A stretch of DNA of 64,000 nucleotides from Botryllus schlosseri (taxonomy: Eukaryota). Of this stretch, positions 29,587 through 62,603 are shown one piece after another. The notes beneath the pieces were generated by a model. That model was not told the DNA's origin and made no database searches. It saw only the letters and a list, made by a program, of their open reading frames with translations. Both the position numbers and the translations under genes were made by a program. Positions within the stretch are counted from its first letter, which is position 1, and every line of letters starts with the position of its first letter. The stretch covers positions 1,488,001-1,552,000 of the forward strand of contig CM119378.1 in NCBI GenBank assembly GCA_051294905.1, written 5' to 3'.

Positions 29587-32500
29587 ATGGGGTCCGTTCT
29601 TATCTCGTATCTCGTGTATGGGATGCTGCTATTGGCTGATGCAAAGAAAAGTAGGTGCTATAATATTGTGATAGCATTGATTGCTAGCTATTACTTGATT
29701 TGTTGATCTCGGCGTCGTTAGTATACTTGATCAACTTTAGCTTTCGCCAGTTCTCTATCATATCGTCCGTGTCATGTCGCGTCAATCAATTTCAATGTCT
29801 GTGGTCGGTTTCTTGCGATCCATACATTTGAAAACCATGTTCAATTGCTGAACTATAGGCTGATTATTTATTTTTAAATTATTTCATTTGCCTTGATCTT
29901 TACAGGACTGAATAATTTAATTGGTGTAGTGATCCTCTTGATGGATGCATTGTAGCAAAGCGTCACTGTTTGTGACCTTCCGCATGATTCGTGGCAGTAT
30001 TGAGATTTTGACCAGTGCATACTGGTGTTAAGTTGATTCAACTTGAGTCACTTTGATAAATGAAGTTGACTTGACCGACTCAGTGCTTTAGAAATATGGA
30101 TTGACGGGTGACCCGAAGTGAAATTTTCAAGTCATTATCATTGGTATCAACTGAATCAGTGTATACCTGCCGGCGGGTGCTTCTTATATAGCAGCCAGAC
30201 ACCTAACAATGTTTACCTTGATCACCAATGAATGATTCCTATGAACATGTCAAAATTTATAAAGATCAAAATTAATTATTTTTCGTGTTAGGATTAGAGA
30301 TGATAGTGTTGAGGGTTAGAGGTGTGGGATGATGGGGTGAGGGTATTAGTGTCGGAGGTGGGTTTTGCGAATATTGTAAGATTAGGGTTGTGGCCGGGAA
30401 GGGTATTATGGCTGGCGTTAGTGATACAATACTCCCAACCCGAATGTTAGGATACCCTAACCCACCTCCAACCCTAATAACCCTCACCCACAACACTGAT
30501 ATCCGTCATTTCCAACCCTAATCTTATGATACCCTAACCCCCCTCCAACCCTAATTTCCGTCAACCCTCACCCCAGCGCGAAAATTAATTTATTTTGACA
30601 TTTAGAAATTTTGACTTGCTCATGAAAAACATTTATTGGTGTGGTGAATATTGCTAGATGTATGACTGCCTTCGAAAAAGAGACTTAGGCCTATACCTGA
30701 AGGCTATGTTATGTCACCGGTATAGTTATCAAGTTGAAGTAGTTATGGTTTTTAGACTGTAGATATCTTACTTTGAATCACTTGTTGGGGTGACCGTGCA
30801 TTTAATTGCAGTCCTGGTAAACGTTTATATAGTTTTTCAAGGTATTCTTCTACATCAATTTGGTGGGTAGTCCTGTGCTGCAAATATCACAATATATGGA
30901 CCTACTGCAGAGCAATGCATAGCGAATAACTGTTTTGTGTTTGATTTGTGTGGGCTTACTTAGCAACAGTTTGATCGCTGAGTCAGTTCGACCTTAGCAA
31001 TTGTATGTTATTCTAGGATTACCATGTGTCCTCCTATTTCAAGAAATCTATAATGTTCTCCTCCGACACCCAAAAGTCCCCTTTTTTTGCAGTTCATCCA
31101 CTTTTATAGCTTTGAGAGTCGGGCGACCGTATAGAGACAACTAAATACGCCATAGTGGATGTGAAATCTGGGTTTCGACAGCAAGGTTGACTAAAATAAC
31201 GGTCAACTACAACCGATTATATGTGGGGACGGGTCTTTCGGCAGTCTAGTCGGAAATTTGACCTTTTTTTAGTCAGCCCATCAATATTAGCAGACAAAAT
31301 TTCAAATCCATATTAATGAATGCTGCGTAATCTTGACAATACATGTCGTTGATCTATTATATATTGTCCTGCTTGCATATCTTTTCATTCTTTAGGTTAT
31401 AAATGCTCGGAAAATCCCGACAAGCAGTGCAGATTCCCGTTTACATATGAAGGAAAAGTCTACAATGAATGTGTTGATGGTTGGGATTATTGGTGCTATA
31501 TTGATGATGCCGAAAATTATGAATATTGCAAATTATGTGAAGGTCAGTGAAGATTATCTCATTACAACTGCCGATACAGTGAGTGATCCTTATATGTGAA
31601 TGAGAGCCAATGAGAGCTCATCATCTGAACTGTGGTAATTATTCGTAGGCCTTTGTATAAGTCCTCCCCGTTTTGCATTAGCTAATGCTGTGGTTCTCAC
31701 CTATTCAGCTAGGAGACCAGTATATTTTTAGACAAATTTTGCGGACCGGTGCACCTTGAAAAAATATACATTACCAAAAAATGTAATTACGAAAAATGTA
31801 TGCACCTCAATATCAAACATCGGAAATTTCAATGTAATGACAAATCTGCAGCTGGTTTTTGATGTTACATGTGTTAATCTTGTTCTATTGAAGTTTCTGC
31901 AAAGCCAAGTCAGGTTCTGGCTCGTTTTATTGATATTTTTATCATTTCAATACTCCGTAAGATTTCAATGAGATGAAAAGATAGGAATGTGTCTGAATGA
32001 CCTGGAGTAGTCTTTCAAGATAATGATATAAAATGTGCAAGAGATAAAAATGAAGTGGCATGTGACGGTAGGCGACGACTAAATGTCATATCTTGATAAT
32101 CTTGGTAATCTGGAGTGTACTCATTCTGAAGAATCTGTTTGTGTTCTGGCTTCGATTGTTCGGTTTCTTTTGAAAGAACTGACTCGCCTGTTTGCTAGCC
32201 TCTATTGTGCTGCCGAATGCCCCTTACTGCTGAATTCAAGGAATTTTGTTGAAGAAGTCTTTCCAACTTTCAAATATGACTGGCTTTGAACGAGTTGTAA
32301 TCTACTTTTAAAATCTTTCGGTACAACACTTAACAGCATTGTGACGTAGGCCAAAACAAAAGTACTCCACAAATTCTATATGGCAACACGTTTTCTCGAT
32401 CAATTAAAAATTGTATATTGCATTTCTCCTGTCAATGGTTTTTTTTTTTAAATTTATGGCATTTTGCAATCAAGCTGTAAAAAGTAGGCGACAATTAAAT

Positions 32501-35500
32501 ATATTTGGCATACCAGCAGGAAAGTTGATGCAGATTGTCGGTTGAGAATCTCTGCGGTAATGTATGCCGAGCGAGATAGTGTAATGGTTATGCGTCCGGC
32601 TTCTCGAGCGGTAGGTCGTGGGTTCGATCCCCGGCCGGGTCATACCAAAGACCCGAAAATTGGTATCCGCAGCTATCCTGCTAGGCGCTCAGCAATCACG
32701 GATAGCATGGAGGAGAAAAAAAACGGGGGCGCAGACTAGATGACCTCCTGGGGCCGTATCGCAACTCCGTCGTCAAAAGCATCTCGATGGTGCAGGCGAA
32801 AAAGAATATCATATCTCTCTCTCTCTCTCTTTGAAAGAAATGGCACAAACGTAGGACCAGATTTAAATCCGCACTAGATATGTTCCTCATCCAGCCTGAG
32901 ATGTATATCATCGGCTACAGAATTGAATTTGGAGTCCTCAAAATCGTTATTTTTATATTATTACTAGGGCTGGGCAAAATCGAGTACCTGAGTGATTCGA
33001 TTCTGAATCACGTAAAATGCTTCGAGTCGAGTCGAGTAATCGAGTATTACTCATTATGACGTCATAGCAGAATATTATCTGTCAAAGTTCAAATATGTAC
33101 CTTTTAAGCGACCACAAGAATATAATGCCTGTTATCCATCATATTAAGGATACTTCCAGCATACCGATTTCATTGCACTTGGTGACAATATTGTGGGATG
33201 ATCATGACTTCGGAAATGTGCTATTTCCAGTAACGTTCGTAGCTTTGTACTTCATGTTTCGTATGCTGCGATACCGCCAATCAAGGTTTCAAGGCTTCAA
33301 CAGTGAAATTAGCATAAACTCGTTGATCGTTGATAAACTCATCGTTGATAAATCAACTTTCAGTGGTGAGGAGCGTATAATTTCAGTACTCGAAAAAATC
33401 GTCTTTTACTACTCGACTCGAATCATTAAAATTAATACTCGATTCAGATTCGAGTACTCGAATCATTGTGCCCAGCCCTAATTATTACACCACAAGGATA
33501 ATTGAAAACGCTTTTATAAATCACTGTTGGACAACTAGAAAGTTCTTGAGCTTATCCCAATTACATTAGAATTAGAATTATAGTTACACAAAGTTATAAT
33601 TCCAATGACTTGGGAAATTGAATTAAAGTTCTGGCAAATGTCTGTGTACGCCAAGCTTGGCTTGTTTCGCACGACACAGTTCTCCAGTAGCATTTTCAGG
33701 AAAACCAGAAATTACATTAAAATTAACGATAGAACATCAGTCAGAACACTTCACGAATTAGATAAGATTTAGATAGTCGGAAATTTTTGCTCTAATTAGT
33801 TTGATTGGACAACTAGAATCATCCATTTGTTCAAGTGATGTTTTGTATTTGAAACTAGAGGGGCTCGAAGTCTCGGACCATCATCAAAGGCTAAGAGTCA
33901 GTAAAAGTTTTAGAACCACTACTGTTGAAAGTCCCCACTTATGGTTGCTAAAGCCTATGTGACGGATGTATTTAATAATTCATTACGCTCTACCAGTCCA
34001 CGTCTGTATTTTTAATACTGCAACAACCTTTATCAATGAAATCCACTTGAACATGAGAATTCAATCTTACAGTTCCGGACGCGACAACAACGGATCTCAT
34101 CAATGCAACTTCTGCTAAAACAACTCCGTCTGCTGATTCCAATTTATTATCAACTGTGTGGGCGACTGCAAAATCCGTAATTACGAGTAAGGCACCGACA
34201 ATTGATATTGAACATGAGGCATCTGCAATATCTGTATTGCAATCAACGACAACTGTTATTCCGGTATCAAGTTCAGCCTCGACTCTGCAGACAAGTCGGT
34301 CTGCCGAAAGCCGGAATAATCCAGGTGAAAGATATTGTGCTTTAAAAATCTTTCGAAATTTTATACTTTTTCAGAATAGTCAAGTAGGTTTTGGCGAATT
34401 GCACTACTTGCTAATGTGGTTATATTTCCACAGTACTGCCGATTCTGCTTTTTTGTAGACTACTTCATAGACAAAACTACTCAATTTTTAGGTTTTTGAT
34501 TCTGTGCAGGAGAAAGTAGTTCTCATGTATGGAATGGAAGGTTGGTTTTAAGGCACTTCTTGGTGAATAAAATTGTCATGCAGCTGAGCTAAATACTCCA
34601 CGATTCACAGTAATTTTTATTTCGAAAAATAGCACCTCACTAATCGCTTTGCGGAAGTATCGAAGATGTAACCTGCGTAGGCGCTGGACCCGGGTATGCT
34701 AGGCTTGTGCGGCATACATAGGAATTGTTTTGGGTATGCGGCATACCCAGAATTCCGTTAGGTCTGTAACTGACTGGCTGGTGAATTGATTGATTTGGAA
34801 ATAAGCAATGTATTTCGTAGTGCTGCCGAACATGTGAGCAAATCTGCAGCAATACATTCAGGCGCGTAGCGAAACCCCGTCCTTTTGAAATGACCATTCT
34901 GACATTAATATTCAATTGCAATTCAGTAAGTCGCATTTTATCAGTGTTGCGCGTGGCCATGGCGGATTAGCGAGAAGTGTGTTTCCAATTAGCGAGAATC
35001 AGAATCGTTTGTGCACAATGTAATGCAACACGCGATCTGCCGCTGAGATGATTGCAGAATTAGGTCATTGCTTGCGGCACGCTCTGTAATCGTCGCTGTC
35101 CTGATTTATCGCGTCTCCATCAAACCCAGTTCCGCTGGCTTGACGAATCGCATCTGCAATAGGCCCGGCGCGCACTATGCCATCGTTGGCCTACTTATTT
35201 GCGTCTGCAAAAGGTCTGGTAGGAAATAATGTCATCGCTGGCCTAACTATCGCATCTCGGGTCTAGCATGCTTAGGCTCCTTATCTCTCGATTGTGATTA
35301 ACACTAGAACGATCAAGTGGCTTTTTTGACGCATTTTCATTATTGAAAAGCTGGCCTTCAGTCAAATCTTACGCTGTTCGGCTGAAACTTCTTGACCATT
35401 TTATGTAGGTCACCTTACCTATGATTTTCATCACTCATCTAGTACAAATAAAAGAGTTATACACAGAACTACCTACAACTACCGAGTGGCTTTTTTGACG

Positions 35501-38500: not shown

Positions 38501-41500
38501 TCCCGCATACCTAGGGAAAATTAGGGTTCAGCGCCTATGGTATCCTGCAATTTCAAGAGTAGCCACCTTCCAATTAACTTCTAAAAGTATACGACCCCTC
38601 GACTGAATCTACTTCTTGAAACTAAACTATCTGAGCACTTTGTCGACCTTGATTTGTGATTTCTATGTGAAGTCGTGTTGTCATGGAAATCGTCACTTCT
38701 ACTTGTACTTTAGTAGAAATTTACGCCGTTACTTCTACTGCTACTGCTCGAGTACCAACAATGAATACTTCAACCACCTCAGGTTGTATCACGACTTTTA
38801 GCTATTTCGATCCTGCACTGCCACTGCAATTTCTCCATTTTCCAAATCCAAAATTTTGCACTCCAATAACTTCGCTTCTATTTGTTGGAATTGAGCCAAA
38901 TTTGTTGTGAATCGTTTTTTCAGACAACCTAACAATTTCATGGGGTAACCAGACAAATTTGAAGACATTTTATATATATTTTTATTAGATAAATCCAGAA
39001 CTTGGTATGTAGCGTTTTTTTAGGTATCCCAACAATGGAATCAAGTACCCAGTGAAATTTGAAAAGAAGTTATTTTCAAACAGCCCTATTGTACCAGCAT
39101 CCAACTTCTTGCATTTTGAAATGCAATTGAGAATAATAAAATTACTAAACCCTAAGGAACGCGGTTTATTTCAAACATCCTCATAATGTTTTTTATTTAA
39201 AAATGCACTGTTGACGAATTTTAGAACCAAGCTGCTGTGGAAAGTACCCTACCTATAAGCGGCTATACCTATGTGATCGGATATTATATATTCTGCCAGT
39301 TAGCTTCTCTGTATTTCTAATGCAGTGGTATTATTATTGCCAACTTTTTTCAATGAACACCACATCAACTTGATAATTTGATTTTTCAGATTCCGAAGCA
39401 ACTACCACAACGGCTTACATTGATGCGACTTCTGAATCTGCAGATTCCGATTTATCATCCACTGTGCGTATGACTGCAAAGCCAGTAACTACAAATGAGG
39501 CATCGAAAATTGACCCTGATAATCACATCGAGGCATCCGCAATCTCGTCGAGCGCTACAGACGTGGAAGACAAAGCTACAAATTCACGTTCCTTGTCTTT
39601 CATTGTTACCTCTGTATTAAAATCAACAACGACTGTTAGTTCATCTTTGCAGACGACAAGTCCACCTTCTGAAAACAAAGAAAGCAAAGGTGAAATATAG
39701 CAGGCGGGTTGTGTTCTGAGGCGGGCAGTAATGAAATACTTGAATATTTTTGTTTTGATAGTACTTCCACTTTGGTTGAGGGTTTTAAGCAAAACTGCTC
39801 TCTTTGTAGACTTGGGATTTTGTGGAAAGTAGTTCATCTGTATGTCTGCATCGCCTCAACGAATGAAATTGTCATGCAGACCGAGCGCAATTGTACCCGT
39901 TTGTGGTGTCATTAATGATTTTGCGTTAGCCGCAAAGATGCACAATTTCATTATCCAATTCAAACGTATATTCATATTGAAGTAAATCCGAATATTTTCG
40001 GCGACACTTGTCGGGGGGTATTCGTCAGCAACTTCTAGAGAATAGAGAATTTGTATATCGACAACGGTACCGCCAAACATGGTCGAATTCTAAAAGTATG
40101 CGGCAAATCTACGTTGTGAAACTACTTGTGCACTTTTCGGCCTTCATTTTCAGTTCAGTTTTGACTTGTCTTGGAAATCAATACTTCCACTTCTACTTGA
40201 TTTAAAGTAGGCGTTTACTTCCACTGGAGTACCAACCATGACACTCCAGTACCGATGATGACGACTTTTGACCTCCTGTGGTTGTATTATGACATATACA
40301 GCTACTGCGATCTTGAATTGTTGGATTGCTCCGAATGTTGAATATGCCGCTTGATTTCTTATGTAAAAAAACTGGCATTATTTCTTTTGACAGTGTCGAG
40401 ATGTTCGATGAATAAAGAATACCCGTGCCAGTTTCCGTTTGAACACGGGGGCAAGCAACACTACGAATGCATATACAGCTCCTGGACCCGCAATTATTGG
40501 TGCAAGAACAAAGAGCCGTTGACGCACTTTGCCTATTGCGAGATATGTGACGGTATGCAATGATTTGCATTGAAAGGGAATGATTGCAAGTGTGGAATCG
40601 GCGCTGAAACTGTTATACACAGTGTTTCAGTTTAGCACAGTGATTTGAGGTGTTTAGTTCCTAACGATCTCGAGTTCTCGACAGCGAATCGTGTAACGCA
40701 GGGGGTTCCAGACCTTTCAGAATTTTAATAAATCAATGACCATCATCACCAACCTTTGAAAAAGTTCGGAAACAAATATTTTCATTGGTAAAAATACCGT
40801 TTATACCTGGGGCTCCCAGCCTTTTTTACGCCGTGGTCCCCTTTTGAGAATTTTTGAAAGTCAATTGCCCACTGCTTTTTCAACCACTTCGCAAAGTTGA
40901 GGACCGTTGTTTATACTGTGAGCTAGCCGGTTAGTTGAAATGATAAAATGATATCAATACAACACGCGATAAACATGATCGCAAATTAATAGTTGTTGCC
41001 TATCCGGTATTGATGGTCAGGCTTGTTTTTGCCGTGGCAATGTCTTCATTGCTCTGTTGTTGTTGAAAAGAACCAGCTACCTGTCATATTGGATATGCAA
41101 GACGCTATGTTGCGTTGTGTTCATTGTTGTAAATCCACATCAATGGCAACGGCACATCCTTCTTCTAGCGGGGTAGCAGTTGCAAAAATTTTAGAAATAT
41201 ATTTAGCAATCTAACTGTAAAACAAAAGTAGCTTGCTGCTATGCTAGCATTTTTATGAAATTTTAATTCATTTCTTTTATTGTGGAGTCGACCCAATATT
41301 AAAATGTCAATATTAATAAACCTAAATGTGAAACAGTACGTTAACTTGATGTCAAGAAGTACCTTACAGCTGGTCTGCTATTTTTGTTCAATTTTTATTT
41401 AATATGGAGTAGACTTGAGTTGAACATATTAATACTAATATATTTGAATATTATATTGAAATGAACCCGGATATTTTCGGCTGACACTCGTCAGGGGTAA

Positions 41501-44500
41501 TGGTCAGCAAATGGTAGAAAATTGGAAACAACATTGTATGATAAATTTATAAGCAAAACAAAGTTGGGAAAGTCAATATCCCGATTTGGCTGTACCGTAC
41601 TTGATTTCATCCAATTCTTTTTTTTGTTCCAGTAGAGTGGACGTGGCTACATGATAATTTTTCAAAATTTTCAGTAAAACGGGCTCGTGCCCCCCGGGTT
41701 GGGACCCCCGCTATAAACTGATGTGAAATTTTTCAGAAAATGAAGTTGCCCCTGAAAATCCGATGACCACCAAAAGCCCCACCACTGTCCTCTCCTCAGC
41801 AAGGCCCGTCGACGAAAGGCTTTCAAGCACCACAAAGAAAAGGATATTGTCTACAGTTGCGTCGGTGATATCGTCAGAGAGTCCCTCCCCCAGTACCCAA
41901 TTCTATTCGCCTAAATCAAAAGTTTCACTGACGACATACAGTGATGCAAAGCCGAATTCTGAAAGGCAGCAGATGTCTTCGACCACAGTGGCTCCTGAAC
42001 AGATCAACTCCACCCCCGAAAAGATCCTTTACGATCCTGCGGTTTCAAGAGCTTTCATCACTACCAGGCCCACTACTACGGAGCTTGATCAGAAGGAGAT
42101 TGCAAGTTCAGCCAAGCCCGAACCTACACCCCTCGTAGAGATTCCGATTACCCCGAAATCCAAGCCTGCAACCGAGTCCTCTCCTCCTACCCAAAGCCAA
42201 TATCAAGGTGTGTCAAGCTGTCTGTAACAGATGGTAGATTGTGTTGGTTTGTGTTGTGGTCGGTAGCGCACTGGCTTGCATCAGCATGTGTTGTTGTGTT
42301 CACTACATGTCGGTTCTTGGGTTTGGTGAAATCGACTACCCTATATTGATTCGATTCGGAATCGTTCATGTTTGAATGTTGTAAAAAAAGTTCAAATAAG
42401 CATCTTTTATCCGACCTCAAGGTATATAATTAGAGTTCTACATCACGTTAAGATAATTTTGCATTTTTTGACTTACCTATTTCATTAATGAGCATGTAAT
42501 TTTAGTCCTCGAAAAACTCGAATCGTTGGAATACTCTATTGAGATTCGAGTATTCGGATGATTGCGCTCAGCCCTAGTTATTATATTCCCTACATGTCGG
42601 TTGGTGTAAAGTTGAAATATTACCAACTAATTTTATGGTCTCGCCAAGATTTAGTCAGCAACCAAGTACTTTTTACTGCAGATTATGTTTGGGTCTTTTT
42701 TGCCTAATTTGGGTGCGCTGAATCCGAATTTGGACATTTGTTTTCTCTCGCGTCGCGTTTTGGAGATAGTCTATCTATTGGTGGGTGGCGGTCAGTAACT
42801 TTTGCATTTTCATAGTGCTCAAGTAGATTTTGCGTTCTTGTCTTTTTCTTGTGTTTTTTGACTACTTCTACTTAGCAGTTTTTAAGGCAAAGCCACTAAC
42901 ATTTTAGAGTTTTCATTTGTGAAGGGGAAAGTAGTTTTGTGGTACGCTTGCATCGCTTTTATGAGTGAAATTTACCTGACAACTGAGCGAACGCTCAAGA
43001 CGTGTACCGATATAGTTGGTTGACGGTCTCCCAACTAGCGGATTTTGAAAATTGAGTTGTTCTAATCCTAGTTGTAGTTGTGGGTTTTCAAAAGTCATTC
43101 GTTTTAGACGTGGATTTTGAAAGTATTAGTACCAATTCTATTTGCGTATTTTCAAAATCCAGTAGTTTTTTCAAGTCTGGAAGGAACCCTGTATCTTGGT
43201 AACTGAACCATTTCTGAATATTGCACCTATTTGTAGTGTGATTTTGTATCGGCCACAAAGATGCATCCTGTGATTTCAAATGTAGGCAACCGCTTAAAGT
43301 ATTCGACCCATCCACCGAATCTACTTTTTGATTTGAGCGCGAGTATTTTTCGTACCTTTATTTTCTACTTGCACTTGAAGTAGTTTTGAACTGTCTTCGA
43401 AACTGCTACTTCTACTTTTAATGGAGTAGAAATGCACTGCATCACTTCTAGTTGAGTAGCGACGAAGACTACTTTGACCACGTCTGGTTTCAACAATGCA
43501 CTGTTTCATTTTTTTTCGTTCTATCTGATTAAAGAAGACATCGCGCCAACATTCTTTGTGGAATGTGGAGATCGGATATTATTTTCAGAAATGAGAATAA
43601 CTTTGTAACAACGATCTCAACTTCATCTCATTGATTTCCAGATGAGGAAGAAAGCGTGCAAGTTTTGGATTCGCGAAATTTGAAGACTGCAAACATACTG
43701 GCGGTGTCTACCACGGATGAAATTTCAACGGGGATGACAACCACGCAGAAAGCTATTGATTTGAGACTGGTCAAAGTCCCGACGCATCGCAACTCTGCCA
43801 CTGATAACTACAATCAAGATGAAGGTATGCGTTGCCGTCTGACTGGGTTGTAATGACTCGACTCAAGTCGCAATTTTTCGGTGACTTCACTCGACTCGAA
43901 GGAGTTATGTGAGATTGACCAAGTCGCAAGGTTCCGAGTCACAAGTCAATCTCACATATAAAGTTTTGACTCGAGTCAAGTTAATCTTTTTCAATTCATT
44001 GCGACCCTACAGACCACCGCTGGTGGATGTCATGATCATATTTGTTGAGACATCACCGAGTTTCTACGCTTCTCAGATGGCGAAAAAGCCAACGGCAAAT
44101 CAGGCCACGTTACGATTATCCTCATCATCTTGTTGCTTCTGGTCATCATCACCGGCGTTTTTGTGATTGTTCTCTGCTTGCGAAGACGCCGTCTCAGGTT
44201 GGTTGGTTTTACTTTTCTCTACAAGTCTCTGGTAAAGATTATGGCGGGGCAAAATCGAGTGCCTTAGCGATTTACTTGAAACGATTTTTTCCTCAAATCC
44301 TACTGGCTACTTGATAAAATTGTTAGGTTACCCAATTGAAGCCTGCACACCGAATTTGGTTCAATTCCAACCGGTAGCCGCATTGCTACAGGAGAAGATA
44401 GGTTTTTATTTACTATAAAAATATGAATTGAAAAAATTTCAAATTTTTCTGTTCACCCCATGAAAGTGTTCGGCTGTCTATAGAAACGATGTTCACCAGA

Positions 44501-46092
44501 TTTGACTCAATTCCAACTATCGGAAGCGGAGTTGTTGGTGTCGAAAAATTTGGTGGTGCCCGTAAATACTATTTTATTCAAATCCAAAATTTTTCGACGG
44601 CAATAACTCCGCTTCCAGTGGTTGGAATTGAGCCAAATTTGGTGAGCATCGTTTCAATAGACAACTGAACAATTTCATGGGGTGAACATAAAAATCTGAA
44701 ATTTTTTTATTCATTTTTTTATAATAAATAAAAAACTTTCTTCTCATGTAGCAATGCGGCTACCGGTTGGAATTGAACCAAATTCGGTGTGCAGGCTTCA
44801 ATTAGCTAACCTAACAATTTTATCTAGCAGCCAGTAGAATTTGAGAGAAAAAGTCATTTTTAAACAACCCTAGTGCGCGCAGCTTTGTAGTACCTATTTT
44901 GTATACAACGATGCTACCAGTCGAGGTTTACAGCATTCCGCACGCCGTGGTGTTGTATAACACTATCGCAGGTATGCTTCTCGCAGATATATCAACTCTT
45001 TGCTTCAAGGAGTATATAATTTCAGTGAGATTGAGCATTAATTATTATCAACGAAAACAAGAGTTTCCATACTTTTTTTCACTGTGGAAGCCCCGGTTAT
45101 GATATGCCGTTTGACTTTGTCATGTGCCTGATACTTGGATTTGATTTACCAAACAGAGCTTCGAAACATCAAGAGGCTGAGATCGGTGAATCGGGCGACA
45201 ATCTGCTGAAACAGAACGGAAGCGACAAAGTGAGTTTTTAACGGAAGGGGTCAAATCCGTCGGTGTTTGCTACTCGGGTAGAAGTAAAAATAAAACCAAA
45301 AATGTCTACTCGATTACAGAAAGTAGGTATTTCCCCAGTCATTTCAAAACTACTACCAAGTAGAAGTAGAATATGGAGATCTTGGAGAGGTATTTAAGAA
45401 AGTAATTTTTAAAAGTAGATTTGGCCGATAAGTCACTTAGTTTTAGCGGTTAATTGTAGGCGGCTAACTTTTGAAATTGCGAGATGCGTCTTGGGATCGA
45501 TGCACCATGGCTGATGGCAGCATATGTAGTCACTTTCGTCTAGTGATGATGAGAATTTCGCTAAAAAAAGTGATGTATGCTCATGCCAAAACTACTGTCT
45601 GCTTTACAAAATTCAAATGAATAGTATATTCATATTGAAATGATCCCGAATATTTTCGGCTGACACTCGTCAGGGTTAATCATCAGCAACGAGAGTCGGC
45701 CGAAGATATTCGGGTTCATATCGATATGAATATAGTATTCAATTGTCTGTTGAAGTTCTGTAACTCCAAGAAGCTCTCAAAAACCGAAATGATAAAACGT
45801 TGAGTAGTTTCGCCTACAAAAAGCAATGCACGTTATTTAAAACCTACTTCGAGTACTAGCAAAAAGTAGCTCAGTATTTCGGTTTTTATCGAATGTCAAA
45901 AATTTATCGACGCTTCAGGCTCGATGCATCTTTTATTACCGCGGGCTTCATTTTCAGAGCGTTTCCGCCGACGGAAGTCAAGAGATGCAGCCACTAAACG
46001 AGAACTGTAGCAAAACAACACCAGGCGACTACGTCGTCATCAAAGATGGGACTGATTCCAAAATAGATCGCAAGGCCACCGTGACTGTTTGA
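29587..46092 (+). CDS. Gene A: type I membrane glycoprotein, SP-FN2-mucin-FN2-mucin-TM-cytoplasmic tail (~657 aa); exons 29587-29650, 31396-31542, 34073-34324, 38714-38782, 39390-39689, 40394-40552, 41737-42207, 43642-43824, 44077-44197, 45157-45229, 45958-46092
   Basis: Signal peptide MGSVLISYLVYGMLLLADA; FN2 motifs CRFPFTYEGKVYNEC..YWC and CQFPFEHGGKQHYEC..YWC; S/T/P-rich exons; TM VTIILIILLLLVIITGVFVIVLCL followed by RRRR; tail ends GDYVVI...KATVTV-stop. All junctions are GT-AG and in frame (ectodomain phase 1, TM exon phase 2, then phase 0). The small 38714 exon is the least certain, and a split into two genes is not excluded. Confidence 0.75.
30190..30670. repeat. Fold-back element with degenerate TTAGGG-like left half and CCCTAA-like right half
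   Basis: ~100-bp outer inverted arms (caccaatgaatg..caaaatt versus aattttgac..tttattggtg); inner G-rich then C-rich repeats. Confidence 0.75.
31396..31542 (+). CDS. Gene A exon: fibronectin type II domain 1
   Basis: YKCSENPDKQCRFPFTYEGKVYNECVDGWDYWCYIDDAENYEYCKLCE; tttag acceptor, gtcagt donor, phase 1-1. Confidence 0.85.
31900..32330 (-). mobile_element. LINE 3' relic
   Basis: aatgagatgaaaagatagga..ggagtagtc..ggtaatctgga motifs. Confidence 0.65.
32566..32830 (+). mobile_element. tRNA-derived SINE with (CT)n tail
   Basis: A box (gatagtgtaatgg) and B box (gggttcgatccc), no closed cloverleaf, ~170-bp body starting GGTCATACCAAAGAC, simple-repeat tail. Confidence 0.85.
32965..33480. mobile_element. 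hAT MITE (TAGGGCTGGGC family); partial copies at ~2760-2897, 10130-10290, 17218-17640 (minus), 42400-42577, 56710-57095
   Basis: TIR TAGGGCTGGGCA / TGCCCAGCCCTA; perfect TSD ATTATTAC. Confidence 0.9.
33640..33830. repeat. Interspersed repeat (CCAAGCTTGGCTTGTTTCGCAC..ATTAG-rich); copies ~12250-12410, 19290-19480, 46375-46555
   Basis: Shared motifs in the same order in four places; class unknown. Confidence 0.6.
35302..37036 (+). mobile_element. Fossil piggyBac transposon (degenerate PGBD-type transposase)
   Basis: TTAA then CACTAGAAC ... GTTCTAGTG then ttga; subterminal GTGGCTTTTTTGACGC (twice left) versus GCGTCAAAAAAGCCAC (right); remnants NRFMEVMSFL, KYLYKGVSYLGK, YNETKPG..QVARQYS and RRPVHVF match recalled piggyBac motifs, with many stops and frameshifts. 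Confidence 0.85.
37326..37716. mobile_element. Kolobok-like MITE
   Basis: ~60-bp TIRs AGTGGCACTGCGCTCTAAAA; TTAA at the right end, left target degenerate. Confidence 0.6.
40394..40552 (+). CDS. Gene A exon: fibronectin type II domain 2
   Basis: SRCSMNKEYPCQFPFEHGGKQHYECIYSSWTRNYWCKNKEPLTHFAYCEICD; gacag acceptor, gtatgc donor, phase 1-1. Confidence 0.85.
41737..42207 (+). CDS. Gene A exon: mucin-like Ser/Thr/Pro-rich stalk
   Basis: 471-nt open phase 1-1 exon matching ORF 41763..42227; tttttcag acceptor. Confidence 0.8.
44077..44197 (+). CDS. Gene A exon: transmembrane helix and stop-transfer
   Basis: GEKANGKSGHVTIILIILLLLVIITGVFVIVLCLRRRRL; ctcag acceptor, gttggt donor. Confidence 0.85.
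44262..44875. mobile_element. Fold-back element with ~290-bp inverted arms; fragment at ~38840-38990
   Basis: gcctgcacaccgaatttggttcaattccaaccggtagccgcattgctaca and its exact reverse complement near 44748-44800. Confidence 0.85.
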
Positions 46093-47238
46093 TGTCGGCC
46101 GAGGCTCCGTGACTTACTGTGATAGTTTGACGATGGACATGCGTGAAACGTCCGTGTGTGCAGGCCTGGGCAACTAAAAAATTCTCAGATTTTCCTGATT
46201 GGAGCAGAATTAGGATTACAGCTACAGTATTTTTCAAAATTCGATTTCAATGGGAATGACTACATTCACAAAAACTTGAAATTGAGTCGGATTCCAAATT
46301 AAAACGAAATAAGTTAACTTCAAGTTAACTTCATATTAAATCAAGAGTTCATTCCCATAAGCATGAGACTGGAAAATGTCTGTACACCAAGCTGCGCGCC
46401 ATACAGCTATCCTGTAGCATTTTCCGGAAAACCATAGAGTAGAATGATAACTGCAACATATTAAGCCTAGGTAAGTAGATACGAATTAGATTAGTCATTT
46501 TACTCTTAATTAGTCAAATGAAACAACTGGAATTGTGTAGTTGTCCAAGTCTGCTCGCGTGTGATCAATGTGATCATGTATCGCTAACTCTTAGTGGAGG
46601 CTAAACACTATGATATCTGTTGAACCATTATTTAACGAATCATTTTCAAGTGAAGTCCGAATCAGTTGCAGTTCAATTCATGTAACCTAACGAGAGATTT
46701 GTTTCGAGTATTCGACATTGGCCTCGACGCATACCTTTTCTCTATTTTTGCGTTTGGAGGCGCGCATATTGTGTTAAATGCATATTTACTTGACTATACG
46801 ATTACGTTACTTATTTCTGCTGATCCCGTTTTATGTTGCGTGCGGTAACGCGCAAGTGTTGCGACACGTTCAGCTGCTGTCGACTATTGCAATTATTTTC
46901 CTGTCGCGGTGTTCGCGCGCTGAACGGGGTTACTTCGTATGGGGTGGTGTTCGTCACTCGCAAGTTCAAAATATTTTTTGTTAGTACGATTCGTGCGTTC
47001 GTTGTTGAGTTGGACTGTTCCTTTATTAATATATGTTTTGTTGGTATCGATTCTTGGTTTTTCGAGCGGGAGGAAACGAGGCAGCGTTACAATGGTTCTT
47101 CTTCTCACCTTTACTACCTTGACGAACTCAGAATTATTGCTTAGCCACAAAAAAAACAGAACTCTACCACGTCACACATTTAATAGGTTGCTCTAAATAC
47201 TAGTTCACAAAATGTGATGTGCGTCAACGAGAGTCTAA

Positions 47239-49523: not shown

Positions 49524-52500
49524 ATGTTCACGTTCACGTTGATTAGTTTAGCAGTAGCGATGACAGGTAAGAAACGATTCTATCCAGAGTTTGTTGATAT
49601 AGCGGTGAAATGAGAAACGACTGATTGCATTGCATTAGCAATTCTTAACTAAAAGAGTCGTCCGCAGTATGTGGATTTCTGTTATCCGTATGTAGGGTTA
49701 CCATACTGGATGTTGTTGATGCAGGCGTCAGGTCGCGGGAATGCGACGAAATCCGCAGTCATCCGGTGACTGACGGTATTCTCGACGTTCCCGGTCTGTA
49801 TGATGATACTGGGTGTTGGAATATTTTCCTCTCTGACAATGAACCATACTCTGGTGTTCTCATCGAAATTTTAGACTTGGGAGTGGAAGCAGGCGTCAAT
49901 CTCACGTTCAAAGGTAAGGTGACAGTCGATGACCAGACTAACCACTTGTTTGATCAGATCAGACTCTGTATAGTTTTCTTTCTTATCCACACAGCATGGC
50001 CGCCACCAATCCAGTTTTCCCATGAAGTTTCAAAATGTGTGGTGTCTGTATTTGGTTTCGGGTTAAGGATATCTTAGCAGCATTCATTAGTACCGTCACC
50101 CCAACCCGAATCCTACGATTCCCCAACGTAACTATACCCGAACTCTAACCTCACCTTGAACATCACTACTCTGAACTTGCAATACCCACCCCTAACATAA
50201 CTATATGACCCCAAACTCGAATTTTTCGATAACCTAACCCTATTTAAACGATGTCCAACCCATAACCCAACCTTTAATCCTAAATTCAACAATGATCCTA
50301 CTATACCCGAATCCTAAACTAATTGAAACGCTCATGGGAACACCGTTATAGGGTGATTTACTTTTGAAAGAGTATAATTAGGTCAAAATTGTAGTGTTAG
50401 GTCAAAAAATTTACTTACAAAGTTGAAACTTTTCTCACACGTGCATTTCGTTTGTATCGTAGATTTTGCACTGTAGGTGAACTTATCATTCCACATTTTA
50501 TAGGTTCACTGTTGTAGACGGCCCATTGTCTGCTCAGTGTGAATCATAAACATTCGAATGAAACAAATAGGTTGACGTAACGTACCGCAATATCCCAACT
50601 GAAGCAAGACTGCCTGGGCATTGCATGGTTCTTATATCAAGAAGCGCATGATGAAAAATTGTGATGTAGACACCATTGCCAGAATGAAACAACGCGGTTT
50701 GTCACTAGCAGTGTACGCAATTTCTACCAATATGCGTAATCAAACTACTGGAATTCTTCATAAGGGCCAGATTTCGTTAAAATGAAAAAAAATTCACGCA
50801 AAAAGTTTTTTTTATGCCAAACTACTTCATAAGGACAGACAGTTCTAACCAGAAATGAAGATAAATAGTACCAATTCTAGCATTATGTGGGAAACACCTA
50901 ATTTGCATACGTTGGGTCAAAATTAGTCACATTCCAAGATTTTTTAAAGTCAAAAATTGTCTTAAAATTTTGATTTTTAGGTCAAAATCTTCCGTATTTT
51001 AGGTAAAAAAATCGCCCTACTGGTTAGTGATGGTTGTGCTAGATGAGACAGTCCACTACACTAGACTGGCTGGTCCTGCACTCTTCAGCGAAAAGAGCGT
51101 GTAAAGTGTATGTGTATCCACACCCTAAAGGTGGTACATGAAAATAGAACCCAAGTGAGGATGATATCGTGGTTATAAATCGTACATGCCTACACGCAAC
51201 CATCATTTGGATCAAACTGTTGTGTTTGATTTATACCAGAGATCTCAAACACGCGGTCCGCGAGATCATTTTGTGCGTCCCGCGACGGCATATTGTAATT
51301 TCAAGTATTCAACAATATATTCCAAGTGCCATATCTATTTTTCAGATACAAGAACTTTAAGTTCACGCTAAAACTACCATAAAAACCACTTAAATATCTA
51401 CAAAAGTCACCATCACATCATTTCTAAAAGCTGCCTTGCGGTAGGAGATCAGATATTGCGTCGCATTTCTAGATCATGATGATAAAACATGACCCATTGA
51501 TGATTCGTGACTGAAAATTGTGATTTGGTGCGAACTTCTCGTAAAATTACTCGATTTCGGATTGACTGGCTGATTAAATAAAAATGACTCGAGTAGAGTC
51601 GGGCCAAACGGCAAAATCAGAGATGGACTTGCGACTCGGAATGGTGACTTAGTAACCCTACGGATGTAAAAATCTGTGAAACTGTCGAGGTGAATAGTAA
51701 TATATCAGACGGTCTTAGCTTACGTTATAGGTACCACCAATAATTGTGTTGAAATGGACAGGGTTACGAGAAATCTTCTGGGCGACACAAGAGGTACAAT
51801 CGCTAAAAAGGTTAAGAAGCAATGCTATTACTATGGCTCAATGATTATATTTAAGTTGCTATTGATATGTTCCAATCATAATCAAAGGCAAAATCTAAGG
51901 CGGATTTAATTGGACTTTGGCAATGAGAGTAACAACAGCCTATAGGCTACTTATCACGACTATATCAAAACCAGAATTTGGCGTGTATAGTGAATAGTAA
52001 ATTACATTTCCATGATGTTTGTGGAATGCCTGTCCGCAAGGTCCCGTCAAATAAGGCCTAATTGGAAATTATACAATGAATACCCGTATTATTGATGCTG
52101 CGGCCGGCGGAAATTAGGAAATTGGCCCGCGAGCACATTTGAGTTTGAGACCTCTGTTTTATACCGTGGTGTAAGTGTGAGTTAGGTTCTAGTTTGTTTT
52201 ACTGCGGGTCTATATTCACACCCGTATATCACGGGTAGTATACGGATGTGAATACACACTCAGACCCCAAAGTCTGATTTACGATAGCCGAACTCTATAT
52301 TAAGGATACCCAACCCATTAAGGATACCCAACCCAAAACCTAACCATTAATACTAAAACCAACTATAAATGGTTGCTGATAAGAAAGTCTGCTGGGCCGT
52401 CTGGTTTTATATAGAGCTTTCAATTATACTGCTATGCCCGCCTATTCCTGTTTCAGGCTACGAGGAGTACGGGTATGGTTCCAAGACTAAGGAGCCGAGC

Positions 52501-55500
52501 TGCTGGTTCTGGACATTCAACAAAACCTGTCTGTTCAACAGCAAAGAGTTGAACAGCAGATGTAACGGCCACGCGCATTTCATTAGCTTCCACGGCCCCG
52601 TAGTTTTGGAATTGCGCGCGCCAACAAAGTCGTTTACAAGCTGGCGTCCGCTTTTTGGGATCAAATACTCGTATATTACTCCTGAATCTTCCTTGCTGTT
52701 TAGTTGTACCGGTAAGTGGAGAGGTGGCGCGGATTCGCAGTATTAGAATTGTGGACGTATCCAGTCCAGAGGTGAGAATCCAAATTATCCTCAATAGGTT
52801 CTATCACAACGTATTGATTTGCAGTCACAAAACTTCGTGCATCATTATGCAGAAAAACAGTCTTTTTTATATATAGCATACGACAGAACTTTGCCCATAT
52901 TAAAACAACTCTAGTTATCGGGAAAAAAATGCAGTCACCCATTGGCGGTATAACCGGTAATGGTAACCGGTTTGCTATTGTCGTGAAATTTCACGAGGTG
53001 GCTATACAGAACCTGCTTAATCTCCTCATTCAGTATAGTATTTCTTGCGCGTACCAAGAGATGTGGAGCGGATTCTGTTGCCATTTTCTACTTGATTTCA
53101 GCTCTAAATGCGTGTCCGAAAGTGGACAAAGGATCGAATTCCGCAGCGGACAACGCGACGATGACAGTTCCCAGCGTGGGAGAGACGAAGTGCCCGCATT
53201 TGTATGCAGGTGCTCTCATTGCTGTGGATGTGTTTTTATCGATTATACTCCTCATCCAGGGCGTAATGTGAGTCATTAAGTATCTTTGATGATAATCGCA
53301 GAACTACACAAATCCAAAGACCTCGTTTCAATTATACTTAACCTTTACGAGTTATCCATTCATTCGTTCATTGATATTTATTGACTCCTCCAATCGAACC
53401 CGCACGGCGCCGCCTTGACCTAGAACAGGGCCGGGCAGCATACGGCCCGCGGACCGGACCTGACACGTGACGGAATTTTGAGCGGCATTTATACAGTTTC
53501 CGGTAATACATGATGTGGTCTGCGGTCTAGTCTGTCGCAATCCCCCAGTATTAGCTGGCTACATCACATTATGGTGACCGTAGGTTATTTATTAGGTCTT
53601 TGTTTTCTTTATATTGAATGTGTCACTGAATGATTTCAAGTTTGCCAACGTGAGAAAGATGGCCATGACACTAATTGGCCCGTTCGGGTATACATACATT
53701 TTCGAGCATGTTCGACCATGAACAATAACATCAACTTGGATACGAACACGAACCAGCTAATAACATTAACAAGGCGATGCTGCTTTCTAATTGGTGCATT
53801 TCAATCTAACGGATGTTAATGCGCTGTCTTTGCTAAGGGTTTTTACGTTTGCCGAGTTCTAAGAACTTGTTCACAACTTTGATCGACCACAGATATCTGA
53901 TAGACTCCAACAGCTATAATCTAAGTACATTAAGTCGGTAAATTAATTGCATACTGTATTGGTCTCTATGCTTCAAACTGAAGTTTACACATTAAATACG
54001 ATTTATTCCTTGTATAGGTGGATGAATACGCGATTAATGTATCGTTTCAAGAATCCGGCCCGCCAAGTACCTAATTTTCCCGTATCAGGCCCGCCGAAAG
54101 TAGATGTTGCATGCCACTGACTTAGGACATGTAAATAAGACACGTGTATATAATGAATGTAGAGTAAAAGAATATGAAATGGGTTCCCAAATTAGGGGTC
54201 CGCTTCGAGTTGACCTTTTTAGTAGTCTCTGCATAGTCGCCTTACACTGAAAACAACGAGAGATGACGGATTGCAAAAAATAGAGTATGTGGGCGTCCTC
54301 GGAGGACGTTTTAGTTTTTATTGAAAAAGAGGACAAACCCTCTTTAAAGAGGGCATATGATATATGAGATTGTACTTTTACCGAGACTTATAGGCAAGAC
54401 GTAGTATTTATTTCTCAAAAATATAATGGTGTACTCAACATACATGCTGAATTGCTGTTTTAAAAAAGGATTTCAAACGAATTGTCGTACCTTCTTATAT
54501 AGTTGTTATTGCAAACAGTGTTCGGCGTTCTGTGCTTTTGTACATGCGATGATCTGTCGCAAGTTCTCTGGCGCAATTTCGAATTTAACAGACCTATTAT
54601 CTGGACGTTCGTATATATTTCAAAGATATTTTGTGTATAGAATTTCTCGAACTCGTAAAAGATATCATTCTTCATTGTCAAAAGTCAAGTGTAGGCCTAC
54701 CGCAAAGTATTCGTGGGCTGAATCTGAAAAATGAACTTGATCTGTTGCTTATTTGTCTGTTTTTATAATTTTGCCTGCAGCTACTACCAAGGAAATGTGA
54801 AACATCATCCGACTCAAAGTGGCAATTATACTTCTGTTTTACTTGCCGACAAACATCTCTTCTTTATGGGTGTTGAAAACGGGGTTGTAATCTAACTTTT
54901 ATAGTTTTTACTCGAATCAAGTCGAGTCTCGAATCAAGTCGAGTCAATCTGACTCACCACCGAGTCAAGTCCGAGTCCAAGTCGGGGAGTAGAGGGTCGA
55001 TATCGAGTCCAAGTCATCGCGTTCACTGTTCAGTTTTGAGTTCAATCCGGTTCAACCCACTTTTTCAACTCTGCTCGAGTGATTTAGAATGGCTCGCATT
55101 CATAACATCGTATTTTTCTTCAGTCGTAAGAGTTTCTGACTCCCATTTTCCAAGTATCAGGACTGATAGACGAATTGCCAATAATGTGGCGACTCCTCTT
55201 CTGTAGAAGTTACAATGAAATGTCTGTCGTGGCCGTCCTATAGTCTCGGGTCATACGACTTGCTTCGAGTCATGTAAACAATAGACGGGTCAATACAAAA
55301 ATTGACTCGAGTCGAACTATTTTACGCATTTAAAAAAAGGACTTTAGTTACATCGAGTCACCAAAAAATTGTGACTCGAGTCATTACAACAAGGGTTGGA
55401 AATATGGTAACCCTCAAATTCAGTATGCTTGTGAAATCTTGAAATCTGGCTCACTGTGAGTCGCGGTAATATTTGCCCGACAATCAACTCGATTTTTGCG

Positions 55501-55829
55501 TTTTCTTTCCAAGAAATTCGCGTTGCTGTAGGCCTACTCCAAGTCCAAAGTATTGTCACCTCGATGAAGAGGGTAAGGGCGAGGTGATGTCACGCGATGT
55601 ACAAGACTCGGCCGGAGACCAGCCTTCGTCTTGTCCGGACAGCGTCAGCCAGGAGACTACAGACTGTCACGCGGGAGGCGATAGTGCCCAATCATCGCAC
55701 GCCGATGTCGTGATGCAGCACGCGCCAGCAGTTGAGACCGCCGTTAGTTCCGCGAGTGACATAATTGCGGTCGATGACGCAGCGGCTGATAAGCCGCTGG
55801 ATGCGAGCGAGTCCGGGCCGAGTGGATAA
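49524..55829 (+). CDS. Gene B: divergent CUB-domain single-pass membrane protein (~327 aa); exons 49524-49566, 49725-49913, 52457-52711, 53102-53262, 54781-54818, 55532-55829
   Basis: SP MFTFTLISLAVAMTG; CUB-like C..DGILDVPGLY....CWNI...VLIEILDL...RCNG..ISFHGPVVLELRA...FGIKYSY split over two phase-1 exons; hydrophobic AGALIAVDVFLSIILLIQGLL then PRK; GC-richer acidic tail with KYCHL. The last two junctions are less certain (weak gtggca donor). Confidence 0.65.
50351..51017. mobile_element. Non-autonomous DNA element with GGGCGATT TIRs
   Basis: ta then gggtgattt ... aaatcgccc then ta; reverse-complement homolog at 63212-63996. Confidence 0.75.
53426..54119 (+). mobile_element. Second copy of the 16.1-kb hAT derivative
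   Basis: Colinear similarity to 16091-16627; TSD acctagaa / acttagga. Confidence 0.8.
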
Positions 55830-59544: not shown

Positions 59545-59584
59545 GCTTATGGCATGGGTTGCTCGGCTTTGAAGACTTTGCCAG

Positions 59585-60600
59585 ATCTATCCACCAAACC
59601 AGACATCACGACACTATCAGAGCAACAAATCTCCATCGTCGCATATACTGAATAAGTAATAACAGAACTATAATTAATGTACTGTCATGTTAATTAAATG
59701 TTGCTTTTATACCATTCCATCATACCAACTACCAGTTACTGTATAAACCAGTTTTTAATTGAAATAACAACCCCTGATGTAGGCTATTAAATTTTTCAGA
59801 AGATGAAGTCACTCCTGAAAATCCGATGACCTACTCCACTAGCACAAGTCCCACTATCCACACCTCAGCACGCCCTGTTAGCGAAAAGCTTTCACGCATT
59901 CAAACGAAATGGATCTCATCTACAGTTACCACAGTGAGATGTTCGAATATGATAATATCTGTAAAGTATATTTCTGCTTTCATTTCGTTTTGGTGTTCGC
60001 GTATAATGGCATTTTTACACTAAACACCGAATTACCAAGTACTGAAGGCAGATACGGAACAGACAGTCATCATATTTCAATCACGCGCCTTAGATGATCA
60101 AGATTTTAGACCTACAAGACTAGATTAAGGCTATGCTGGTGTATATTTGATGCTGTTATTTTGGTATATATGGTGCGTCGACTACATTTGTCATTTCAGA
60201 CCAGGCCGATATTATATTTCATGATTCGTGATCTGATTGCTGTCGATTACCCTTGAGGAGCGTTAACCGAAAATGTTCAATATGAATATATAATTCAATT
60301 GCATAATATATATTATCATTGCAATATTTGCTAATCGTTTGTCTGATGTGTTTGCGAGCTTCGAGTCCCGTGCTTTGATCTGGTCATCTACGGTCTCGTC
60401 ATCACACGCGTTTTGTCGATTGTGAAAACGGATCAGACAACTCGTGAGTATCGGAAAGTATAGAAAGCGTATGTTTTCAGGAAGTTGACTACGCGTACTC
60501 ACTACTCATCGTGACACCCAGCGAATGAGAAACAGTATACCGAAGACGGCTCATCGACGTGCATTCAACCGACTGCGTCTATGTAGCGATGAATGTCAGA
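59585..60600 (+). pseudogene. Decayed gene-A-like fragments
   Basis: From 59800, atttttcag then EDEVTPENPMTYSTSTSP..SARPVSEKLSRI is clearly paralogous to gene A 41737 (ENEVAPENPMTTKSP..SARPVDERLSST) but has no phase-1 donor. Weaker hints: S/T piece 59585-59655 ending in a stop; ENGSDNS plus gtgagt near 60425-60452 resembling gene A QNGSDK plus gtgagt. Confidence 0.5.
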
Positions 60601-60644
60601 TGAATATTTGAAGAACTTGGAGATACAGAGCTTCAATAAACAAT

Positions 60645-60869: not shown

Positions 60870-61522
60870 ATTCATGTTTGACTTGGCGAGGTTGAGAAGC
60901 AGGCCTTCAGAGGTGGTCAGTAGCGAAGCACCTTTAAGTTTTCCAAGCACTCGCGTAGTTTTTGCCTACTTGCACTGTACTTAGACTCATGTTTTAGATT
61001 ATTTCCGTTCATAATTTATAGATTTTTGGGCAGAACTACGTGCATTTCACACTTTGGACTGAGTAAAGTAAAATGCAAATTTGGGGCACGTTTGCGTTAC
61101 GTTTATGCGTGAGATTGCAATTGCAACTGCTCGAAACAGCCCTACGTCAAGGTAGCATGAATATATTTTCGGAAAAGGTACCAATTTGTGTAGCTCTGTT
61201 GGTAATTTTGCGTTACCAGTGAAGATGCAACCGGGATCTTCGTAAGTGGTAACATCCGACTGACTGCTAAAAGCATGTGAACCATCGAGCAAAATCTACG
61301 TTTTGAAACGATTAACTTGTATAGTTTTCAGAGCATCATTATCTTCTCTCGAAGTTATTTTGACGTTGGTCCTAAATTGATACCTCAACCCGTAATTGAG
61401 TAGAAGTTTGCGATGTTACTAATCGCGTTTCTCTTTACAGTTCATGGTGGAGTCCTATTCTCATTTAATTCTGCTCCTAAATCTGCATGGAAAGATTTGA
61501 ATGCATCCGTCCTGCTCGACAA

Positions 61523-62603
61523 ATGACCGTACACGCTTTAGCAGTTCTTATGTTAGCGACAGGTAGGATGCACGTAAAACAAATGCCATGTTACAATACC
61601 CATACGTGTTACCTACACAGCAGACTCTAAATCGATCAAGCATCCACTAAGGTTGTATTTAAAACAAGTAGCGCTTTAAAGCACTTTGCTTAAAACGTGT
61701 TTTAAACAATGTTTTAAATAAATGACATTTTAAAAATGATGTATTTTTTAAAAAGTTGTATAATCATTTCATAATTGCGTAAATACTTCCGAAAAAACGG
61801 GCGGACTGAGCCTTCGGATGACTTGCGCCAGATGTAGTAGATATAGGCTACCATATGGAATGGTTCAAACCCTACAAATTGTCGCAAGTTCAACGGTTAT
61901 ATAGTACGTAGATACATATCCGTAGAACGGAATGGGTGCTATGATGATGACCGCTGACCGTAAAAATATTAGATAAATGTGTAGTCCTGCTCAAATATTT
62001 TTTGTCGGTTTAAGAGGGTATTCAAGGAAAATCTTTTTCGTCGAAGGAGCCATATTGACTCTGTATTTTCTGTTGTTGTTAAGAGGCCATAAAACAATTT
62101 CAATCCATGGTGACGTCATAGTTGAAGATTCTTGACGTCATGGCTAACAAACAAAACATAAAATAAAAAACATTCTATAAACAAGGGCCCTGTTATAAAT
62201 ATGTTTGTTTTGAATTTATTTTTGTCTTAAATGCAACCCTACCTAAAGCGTGATGTTTGGTTCATTGACTTTTCCACGTCGTTTCGACTCCGTCCTATTT
62301 TACCATTGTATCCCAATCTTGGAGTGTTTTGAAATAATAAAAAAGTTTCATCATCTGAATCTGCATCTTGTATTCACAATCGTTCTCAACTTTAACGACA
62401 AGGTGGACTCTCTGACAATATTGGCAGTTGTAACTTCCACGAGCGCGTGAATACGACAGAGGGAGCAATTAATGGACCCCGAGGGAATGAGTTGGCTTGT
62501 TGGATCTTCGAACCACCGATCGAAAGCCCGAAGCAAGGACTTTTTATCCAAGTGAAAAGTGTCGATTTTAAAGAATACCCAGACGTCTCTTTCTACTTTG
62601 AAG
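61523..62603 (+). CDS. Gene C (5' part; continues beyond window): paralog of gene B; exons 61523-61562, 62403-62603
   Basis: SP MTVHALAVLMLATG with phase-1 gtagga donor; CUB first half CNFHERVNTTEGAINGPRGNELACWIFEP...GLFIQVKSVDF...FYFEG with the same exon boundaries as gene B 49725-49913. Confidence 0.65.

Follow-up and report, generated by a model that had tools for sequence, protein, structure and literature searches.

A tandem cluster of probably ascidian-restricted membrane glycoprotein genes in Botryllus schlosseri and the question of a recognition role

Does a row of co-oriented genes for small surface proteins in a tunicate genome represent a recognition system, or rather a local family of membrane glycoproteins? 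The question is raised by a stretch of 64,000 nucleotides from Botryllus schlosseri (G000:C8:1488001-1552000, hereafter the window; about 40% G+C and intron-rich), in which genes A, B and C and the relic of one gene A exon lie between positions 29587 and 62603, all on the + strand. The original prediction had described three co-oriented genes and a relic, assigned their products to the secretory pathway as membrane-anchored proteins, and proposed an allorecognition, immune or gamete recognition system. Through exon models, open reading frames (ORFs) and alignment of the relic, the genes and the relic were recovered at the places proposed, down to the end point at 62603, which is the final base of gene C exon 2, and the signal peptides and transmembrane (TM) segments of the models agree with single-pass surface proteins. 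On the evidence gathered here, this locus of the 495.5-Mb assembly is probably a tandem array of type I membrane glycoprotein genes that are confined to ascidians and arose through local duplication and exon shuffling; a recognition role is speculation unsupported by the present data.

Structure of genes A and B

Gene A (29587-46092) is modelled as eight exons, each bounded by canonical GT-AG sites and compatible in phase with its neighbours, which join into one 1683-nt ORF encoding 560 amino acids (aa). The order along the protein is signal peptide, FN2, mucin, mucin, FN2, mucin, a stalk with TM helix and RRRR stop-transfer sequence, and a tail of about 60 aa with a single YxxΦ motif (YVVI) and hydrophobic residues at its C-terminus. 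All of exons 2 to 6 have phase 1-1, the usual arrangement for exons of extracellular modules. The exon 7-8 junction, and hence the junction with the tail, depends on a predicted donor, placed at 44232 or alternatively at 44198.

The identification of both modules as FN2, already proposed in the original prediction, was confirmed by Pfam, by profile searches and by the pattern of Cys and aromatic residues. By hmmscan with the Pfam fn2 model (PF00040, curated cut-off of 22.2 bits), exon 2 scored 23.6 bits, above the cut-off, and exon 5 scored 19.6 bits, below it; in a six-frame search of the genome both exceeded it, with 24.2 and 22.6 bits, and a further copy on C179, an 18.9-kb unplaced contig considered below, reached 28.1 bits. 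A profile built from these three sequences matched the FN2 modules of PDC-109 (3.8e-10), MMP-9 (2.4e-9), MMP-2 (3.5e-9) and fibronectin (4e-6) in the PDB, as well as that of CI-MPR. In the alignment, both gene A modules retain the FN2 pattern of four Cys with its aromatic core (FPF, W, WC); each also bears two additional flanking Cys, and the C2-C3 loop is shortened. The AlphaFold2 (AF2) model of the 48-aa module, computed from the three-sequence alignment, was of low confidence, with a predicted local distance difference test (pLDDT) score of 60 and a predicted template modelling (pTM) score of 0.31, and Foldseek returned no meaningful match for it.

Between and after the FN2 modules, gene A is free of Cys over long stretches, Ser and Thr together making up 38% of exons 3 and 4 and 31% of exon 6, the latter with an additional 13% Pro. 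Such a long Ser/Thr(/Pro)-rich region beside a TM anchor justifies the label of mucin, and the spacers are presumably O-glycosylated. The product would thus be a tethered mucin, with two FN2 modules displayed on Ser/Thr-rich spacers above a single TM helix, and it could be internalised through its Tyr motif. FN2 modules elsewhere bind collagen or gelatin, or ligands of the phosphorylcholine type, and the product of gene A would therefore most likely bind components of the matrix or tunic at the cell surface. A word-based protein search with exon 6 found no sequence relatives of gene A; the blank is uninformative, as the library evidently lacks the transcripts of this species, given that exon 2 of gene B, a transcribed gene, was also without a match.

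The five exons of gene B (49524-55829) encode 322 aa. A short signal peptide is followed by an ectodomain of about 150 aa with six Cys, and then by stalk, TM segment and tail. The RNA data consisted of contigs from runs X1 and X5, which belong to two studies, a third run, and the raw reads of two bulk RNA sequencing (RNA-seq) runs. In the X1 contig (697 nt) and the X5 contig (929 nt), the GT-AG joins 49566 to 49725, 49913 to 52457 and 52711 to 53102 are present, so that introns 1 to 3 are seen spliced. The exon 4-5 joint is predicted, at an acceptor at 55514, and the X5 contig, which runs 386 nt past exon 4, is consistent with this position. Other acceptors considered for exon 2, at 49696 and 49668, were ruled out by the RNA joints and by conservation of 49725 in B', a close paralogue described below.

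Two further observations concern the transcripts of gene B. A low-depth contig of run X1 covers window positions 53289-53437, just past the exon 4 donor, and read-through past this donor would end the protein as ...LIQGVM-stop, a tail-less form. Within the introns, the segments 50340-50939, 51340-52339, 53940-54139 and 54940-55339 show contig depths in the thousands in runs of RNA type; these are high-copy transcribed repeats, which inflate k-mer shares.

The B family, its ectodomain and the neighbourhood

Gene B is one member of a family that occupies eight places in the genome, seven of them intact-looking on C8 and one broken on C14. Gene C runs off the window, with exon 3 at L001:1596-1860 and a TM exon near L001:3841-3996, in the same phases. 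B' is an intact close paralogue at L003:1369-7615 (C8:1563369-1569615), 11-18 kb past the window, and shares with gene B 68-77% identity in the ectodomain exons and 39-43% in the TM and tail. Four distant genes form two tandem pairs at C8:3.00-3.13 Mb (L007, L008, L010 and L011); their N-termini carry 'CGKT' and look more CUB-like, and A-like exons were not found beside them. The broken copy lies at C14:22463892-22464005 and contains an in-frame TAA. These comparisons of paralogues within C8 bear out an origin of the cluster by local duplication. The more specific idea of a duplicated two-gene cassette (A-B-A'-C) was not confirmed, as it depends on a single relic exon, with 57-60% protein identity to the start of gene A exon 6, near which no other colinear gene A sequence was found.

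Outside this genome, an exon 3 profile searched against 1.84 billion representative proteins returned one weak relative of the B family, P0001 (E 1.6e-4), which derives from a single public run and whose 2-kb Logan contig is L013 (SRR23343704). In the ORF of L013, an exon-3-like part is joined directly to a stalk and the start of a TM segment. With this one weak match, no match by word search and nothing on such proteins in ascidians found in the literature, the description of the cluster as uncharacterised and lineage-restricted stands, and the genes appear, from the sequence searches, to be ascidian-restricted.

The coordinates of the exons and of the relic are collected in Table 1. Elsewhere in the window, a fragment of a retroelement reverse transcriptase (Pfam RVT_1, 91.9 bits) lies on the - strand at 21874-23077, and the - strand at 1500-11000 holds several open exons that resemble coiled coils in sequence, for which no Pfam family was found and which are probably a separate upstream gene.

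Table 1. Exons of genes A, B and C and the gene A relic, in window coordinates
Feature	Position	Strand	Description
Gene A exon 1	29587..29650	+	ATG, signal peptide MGSVLISYLVYGMLLLADAKK, then phase-1 GT donor
Gene A exon 2	31396..31542	+	FN2 module 1, six Cys, phase 1-1
Gene A exon 3	34073..34324	+	Ser/Thr-rich mucin exon
Gene A exon 4	39390..39689	+	Mucin exon; forms a tandem duplicate pair with exon 3 (61% identical in aa over the alignable part)
Gene A exon 5	40394..40552	+	FN2 module 2, 38% identical to module 1
Gene A exon 6	41737..42207	+	Ser/Thr/Pro-rich mucin exon
Gene A exon 7	44077..44231	+	Stalk, TM helix, RRRR stop-transfer; predicted donor 44232, alternative 44198
Gene A exon 8	45958..46092	+	Tail with GDYVVI; ends TVTV-stop
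Gene B exon 1	49524..49566	+	MFTFTLISLAVAMT; exon and donor conserved in B'
Gene B exon 2	49725..49913	+	N-terminal half of all-beta ectodomain (Cys ... CWNI motif)
Gene B exon 3	52457..52711	+	C-terminal half of ectodomain, four Cys
Gene B exon 4	53102..53267	+	Stalk, TM helix with one Asp
Gene B exon 5	55514..55829	+	104-aa acidic tail with KYCHL; acceptor predicted from B' conservation
Relic of gene A exon 6	59790..59936	+	Single exon; acceptor at 59800 and about 47 similar codons kept
Gene C exon 1 (candidate)	61523..61562	+	MTVHALAVLMLAT; phase-1 donor like gene B; predicted
Gene C exon 2	62403..62603	+	Diverged homologue of gene B exon 2

The original prediction had called the B-family ectodomain a CUB, and this label was not sustained by Pfam, by PDB profiles or by comparison with the genome's own CUB domains. 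Searched exon by exon with Pfam, the B-family exons gave no CUB (PF00431) even at E 10, and a genome scan with the CUB model yielded at least 146 exon matches, none at B-family loci. Profile searches of the PDB with the family alignments of exon 2 and of exon 3 likewise gave no CUB, only chance matches (Photorhabdus lectins, scorpion toxins). When the joined exon 2 and 3 alignment of seven paralogues was compared by hhalign with 17 bona fide CUB domains from this genome, the sole match was a local one of 27 columns, at the 'C-W-x-I' motif of the second Cys and in the equivalent register, with P 0.049 and a probability of 1%. A position of the intron common to genuine CUB genes was also considered and dropped, as, by inspection, the B-family intron falls before the third Cys and the split CUBs of this genome break after it.

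Structure prediction was carried out on the paralogue at L010:6404-6946, which retains the open in-frame intron between exons 2 and 3 and thus includes junk residues at about 57-100, with an alignment made of exon fragments of all paralogues. The AF2 model is an all-beta sandwich, with pLDDT of 62.9 overall and 65-88 in the core and pTM of 0.63. Foldseek against the PDB gave a weak best E of 0.047, searches of AFDB clusters and of the Atlas by fold gave weak matches only, and feature searches of the ESM Atlas provided no usable lead. By VIA-align, the top Z of 5.3 belonged to the C-domain of C. perfringens enterotoxin (C-CPE), and CUBs (meteorin, TMPRSS6, neuropilins, cubilin, Kremen, TSG-6 and C1s) followed with Z of 3.7-5.0, level with other jelly rolls (C-CPE, PliG, collagen-binding and SID1). 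A CUB-like jelly roll is therefore a plausible model for the B-family ectodomain, and CUB membership is unproven.

Selection, variation and competing explanations

The comparison of B with B' indicates where constraint falls. The ratio of nonsynonymous to synonymous substitution (dN/dS) is 0.47 in exon 2, 0.24 in exon 3 and 0.91 in the stalk/TM exon, each at a synonymous divergence (dS) of about 0.5, and 0.51 in the tail, at dS of about 0.9. The lower ratios in exons 2 and 3 than in the stalk/TM and tail identify the ectodomain as the constrained part; it is under purifying selection, which speaks against a polymorphic recognition locus. The products of B, C and B' would be small receptors in which a short signal peptide precedes an all-beta ectodomain of about 150 aa with six Cys; stalk and TM helix then lead to an acidic tail that diverges between the paralogues. 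A constrained ectodomain beside a drifting TM and tail fits a preserved unit for ligand binding whose coupling to the cell interior can change, and the beta-sandwich would most likely serve to bind a conserved ligand.

The tails hold one YxxΦ each, in the contexts PGDYVVI (A), SPKYCHL (B) and SRDYNRI (B'), and YCHL of gene B aligns with YNRI of B'; the membrane-proximal YxxΦ is retained in B-family tails that are otherwise divergent. The TM segments and the motifs GDYVVI and KYCHL named in the original prediction are all present in the translations. An immunoreceptor tyrosine-based inhibitory motif (ITIM, [SIVL]xYxx[ILV]) or activation motif (ITAM, paired YxxL 6-8 residues apart) was not found in the tails of A, B or B', both the residue at -2 and a second motif being missing, so that the tyrosine-containing tails stand as single YxxΦ signals and not as ITAMs or ITIMs.

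A second line of comparison is offered by contig C179 (L002, L006), which matches window 15753-49652 in colinear order with 75-96% identity and has the window as its only long relative in the assembly. It carries a short version of gene A, composed of signal peptide, FN2, TM and stop, together with a variant of gene B exon 1. The signal-peptide and FN2 exons are intact and the TM exon runs into a stop; exons 3-6 and 8 are missing, and with them the mucin, the second FN2 and the tail. Against the FN2 exon of gene A, the C179 copy has 85% aa identity, dS of 0.2 and dN/dS of 0.29. Two readings fit C179, a highly divergent haplotype and an unplaced paralogue.

Several observations weigh against the reading of the locus as a cluster of functional membrane glycoprotein genes. 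The exon 7-8 joint of gene A is a predicted one, and the RNA signal of the gene is a k-mer share of 0.11 (run X1, sampled words of 39300-46200), which could stem from intronic repeats, because the shares at gene B come largely from such repeats. Exons 3 and 4 of gene A may both be included or may be alternatives. Gene B is weakly expressed in the runs examined, with contig depths of 12 and 8 and near zero in the two bulk RNA-seq runs, and the Asp in its TM helix is not conserved in B'. What the analysis establishes is how the genes are built, that the modules of gene A are FN2, that gene B is spliced, how large its family is and under which selection it evolves; glycosylation, ligands, uptake through YxxΦ and any functional link between A and B are inferred.

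Among the alternatives, the one that best survives holds that blood cells carry the products as innate immune or pattern-recognition receptors that are not polymorphic; the FN2 modules and the beta-sandwich would engage microbial ligands or damaged matrix and trigger uptake via YxxΦ. The architecture resembles that of FN2-bearing endocytic receptors with Tyr-based tails, such as the mannose receptor family, the ectodomain is constrained, and low expression in bulk RNA is what a minor cell type would be expected to give. However, neither a lectin nor another known pattern-recognition module is present, and we regard this explanation as unlikely.

A different objection is that gene A is not one functional gene, and that the 560-aa model is an artefact of chaining exons that belong to two genes, to mutually exclusive mucin exons or to a decaying locus. 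The RNA signal of gene A is limited to the k-mer share given above, exons 3 and 4 duplicate each other without a change of phase, the C179 copy lacks five of the eight exons, and a relic of exon 6 lies nearby. Nevertheless, all eight exons are open, bounded by GT-AG and in phase, and yield a single ORF with start, TM and stop; neither FN2 module has lost any of its six Cys or its aromatic core; and the dN/dS between A and C179 in the FN2 exon is low. The artefact is accordingly given a slim chance.

Equally improbable, in our judgement, is a polymorphic locus for self/non-self or gamete recognition, in which alleles of A, B and C would differ strongly from one individual to another, their products would discriminate between partners and C179 would be the second haplotype. 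The lineage-restricted, clustered surface proteins and the strong divergence of the paralogues are in keeping with such a locus, as is C179, colinear with the window, its only long relative, and structurally different in gene A at dS of about 0.2 in the common exons. The X1 and X5 transcripts depart from the genome at two shared positions among 610 exon bases of gene B, and the third run adds three differences, all in exon 4 (stalk/TM). In favour of the idea, all five, at window positions 49799, 53174, 53176, 53218 and 53245, change the amino acid (Y40D, S187N, V188M, I202V and I211V, respectively), the first giving the residue present in B'.

However, five replacements out of five are not significant, the counts being far too small for a test, and 2 differences in 610 exon bases between two studies and the genome do not look like an allorecognition gene; this low polymorphism, which counts weakly against a recognition role, comes from a tiny sample. 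The B/B' ectodomain is under purifying selection, the tails are without ITAM or ITIM, the four other B-family genes have no gene A beside them, and C179 may be an unplaced paralogue. Taken together, the constrained ectodomain, the few differences in gene B, the single YxxΦ and the unpaired A and B leave the proposed allorecognition, immune or gamete recognition system without support, although the idea is unproven rather than refuted because the polymorphism sample is tiny. C179 is the sole observation that keeps it alive, and there is a very slim chance that this contig is the other haplotype and that old, structurally distinct A alleles are held by balancing selection at a new ascidian locus for self/non-self or gamete recognition.

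The tandem cluster of membrane glycoprotein genes therefore remains the preferred reading, and its interest is moderate, lying in the history of domain shuffling and in the annotation of ascidian surface proteomes. If the models hold, gene A would represent an unreported usage of FN2, with the modules presented by the membrane mucin of an invertebrate chordate, and the B family a lineage-restricted receptor fold outside the coverage of sequence libraries. Were C179 allelic, alleles of gene A would differ by four exons (mucin-mucin-FN2-mucin) and the cytoplasmic tail, at a synonymous divergence of about 0.2; only in that case, or if the locus proved highly polymorphic, would it gain real importance, by offering tunicate recognition genetics a new testable candidate.

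Comparison with known systems

Among known proteins, the mannose receptor family (MRC1, Endo180/MRC2, DEC-205 and PLA2R) and CI-MPR share with gene A an FN2 in the ectodomain, a single TM and a short tail with a Tyr sorting motif. Gene A differs from the mannose receptor family in having no ricin-type or C-type lectin domains and in carrying two FN2 modules, each with two extra Cys and a shortened C2-C3 loop, with mucin spacers between them. Its long Cys-free Ser/Thr(/Pro)-rich ectodomain, single TM and short tail recall the membrane mucins CD43, PSGL-1, endomucin, CD164 and MUC1; in contrast to these, gene A has folded FN2 modules embedded in the mucin and has neither a SEA domain nor a tandem-repeat array.

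For the B family, the closest comparison is with CUB type I proteins (neuropilins, NETO, CDCP1 and Kremen), which have a beta-sandwich similar in size to the one predicted here; the spacing of the N-terminal Cys pair and a 'C-[WL]-x-I' motif are found at CUB-equivalent places. Unlike these proteins, the B family is missed by the Pfam CUB model, reaches a profile-profile probability of only 1%, and obtains structure scores that are shared with other jelly rolls.

The recognition loci already known in tunicates, fuhc, BHF, fester and uncle fester of Botryllus and s-Themis and v-Themis of Ciona, are defined by extreme allelic polymorphism and by linkage to phenotype, and such loci use EGF/Ig, SCR, PKD or fibrinogen-type domains. 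The cluster described here is set apart from them by its domains and by a polymorphism in gene B that looks ordinary, in a tiny sample; what it has in common with them is that genes for secreted or membrane proteins specific to the lineage lie clustered in the genome of a tunicate.

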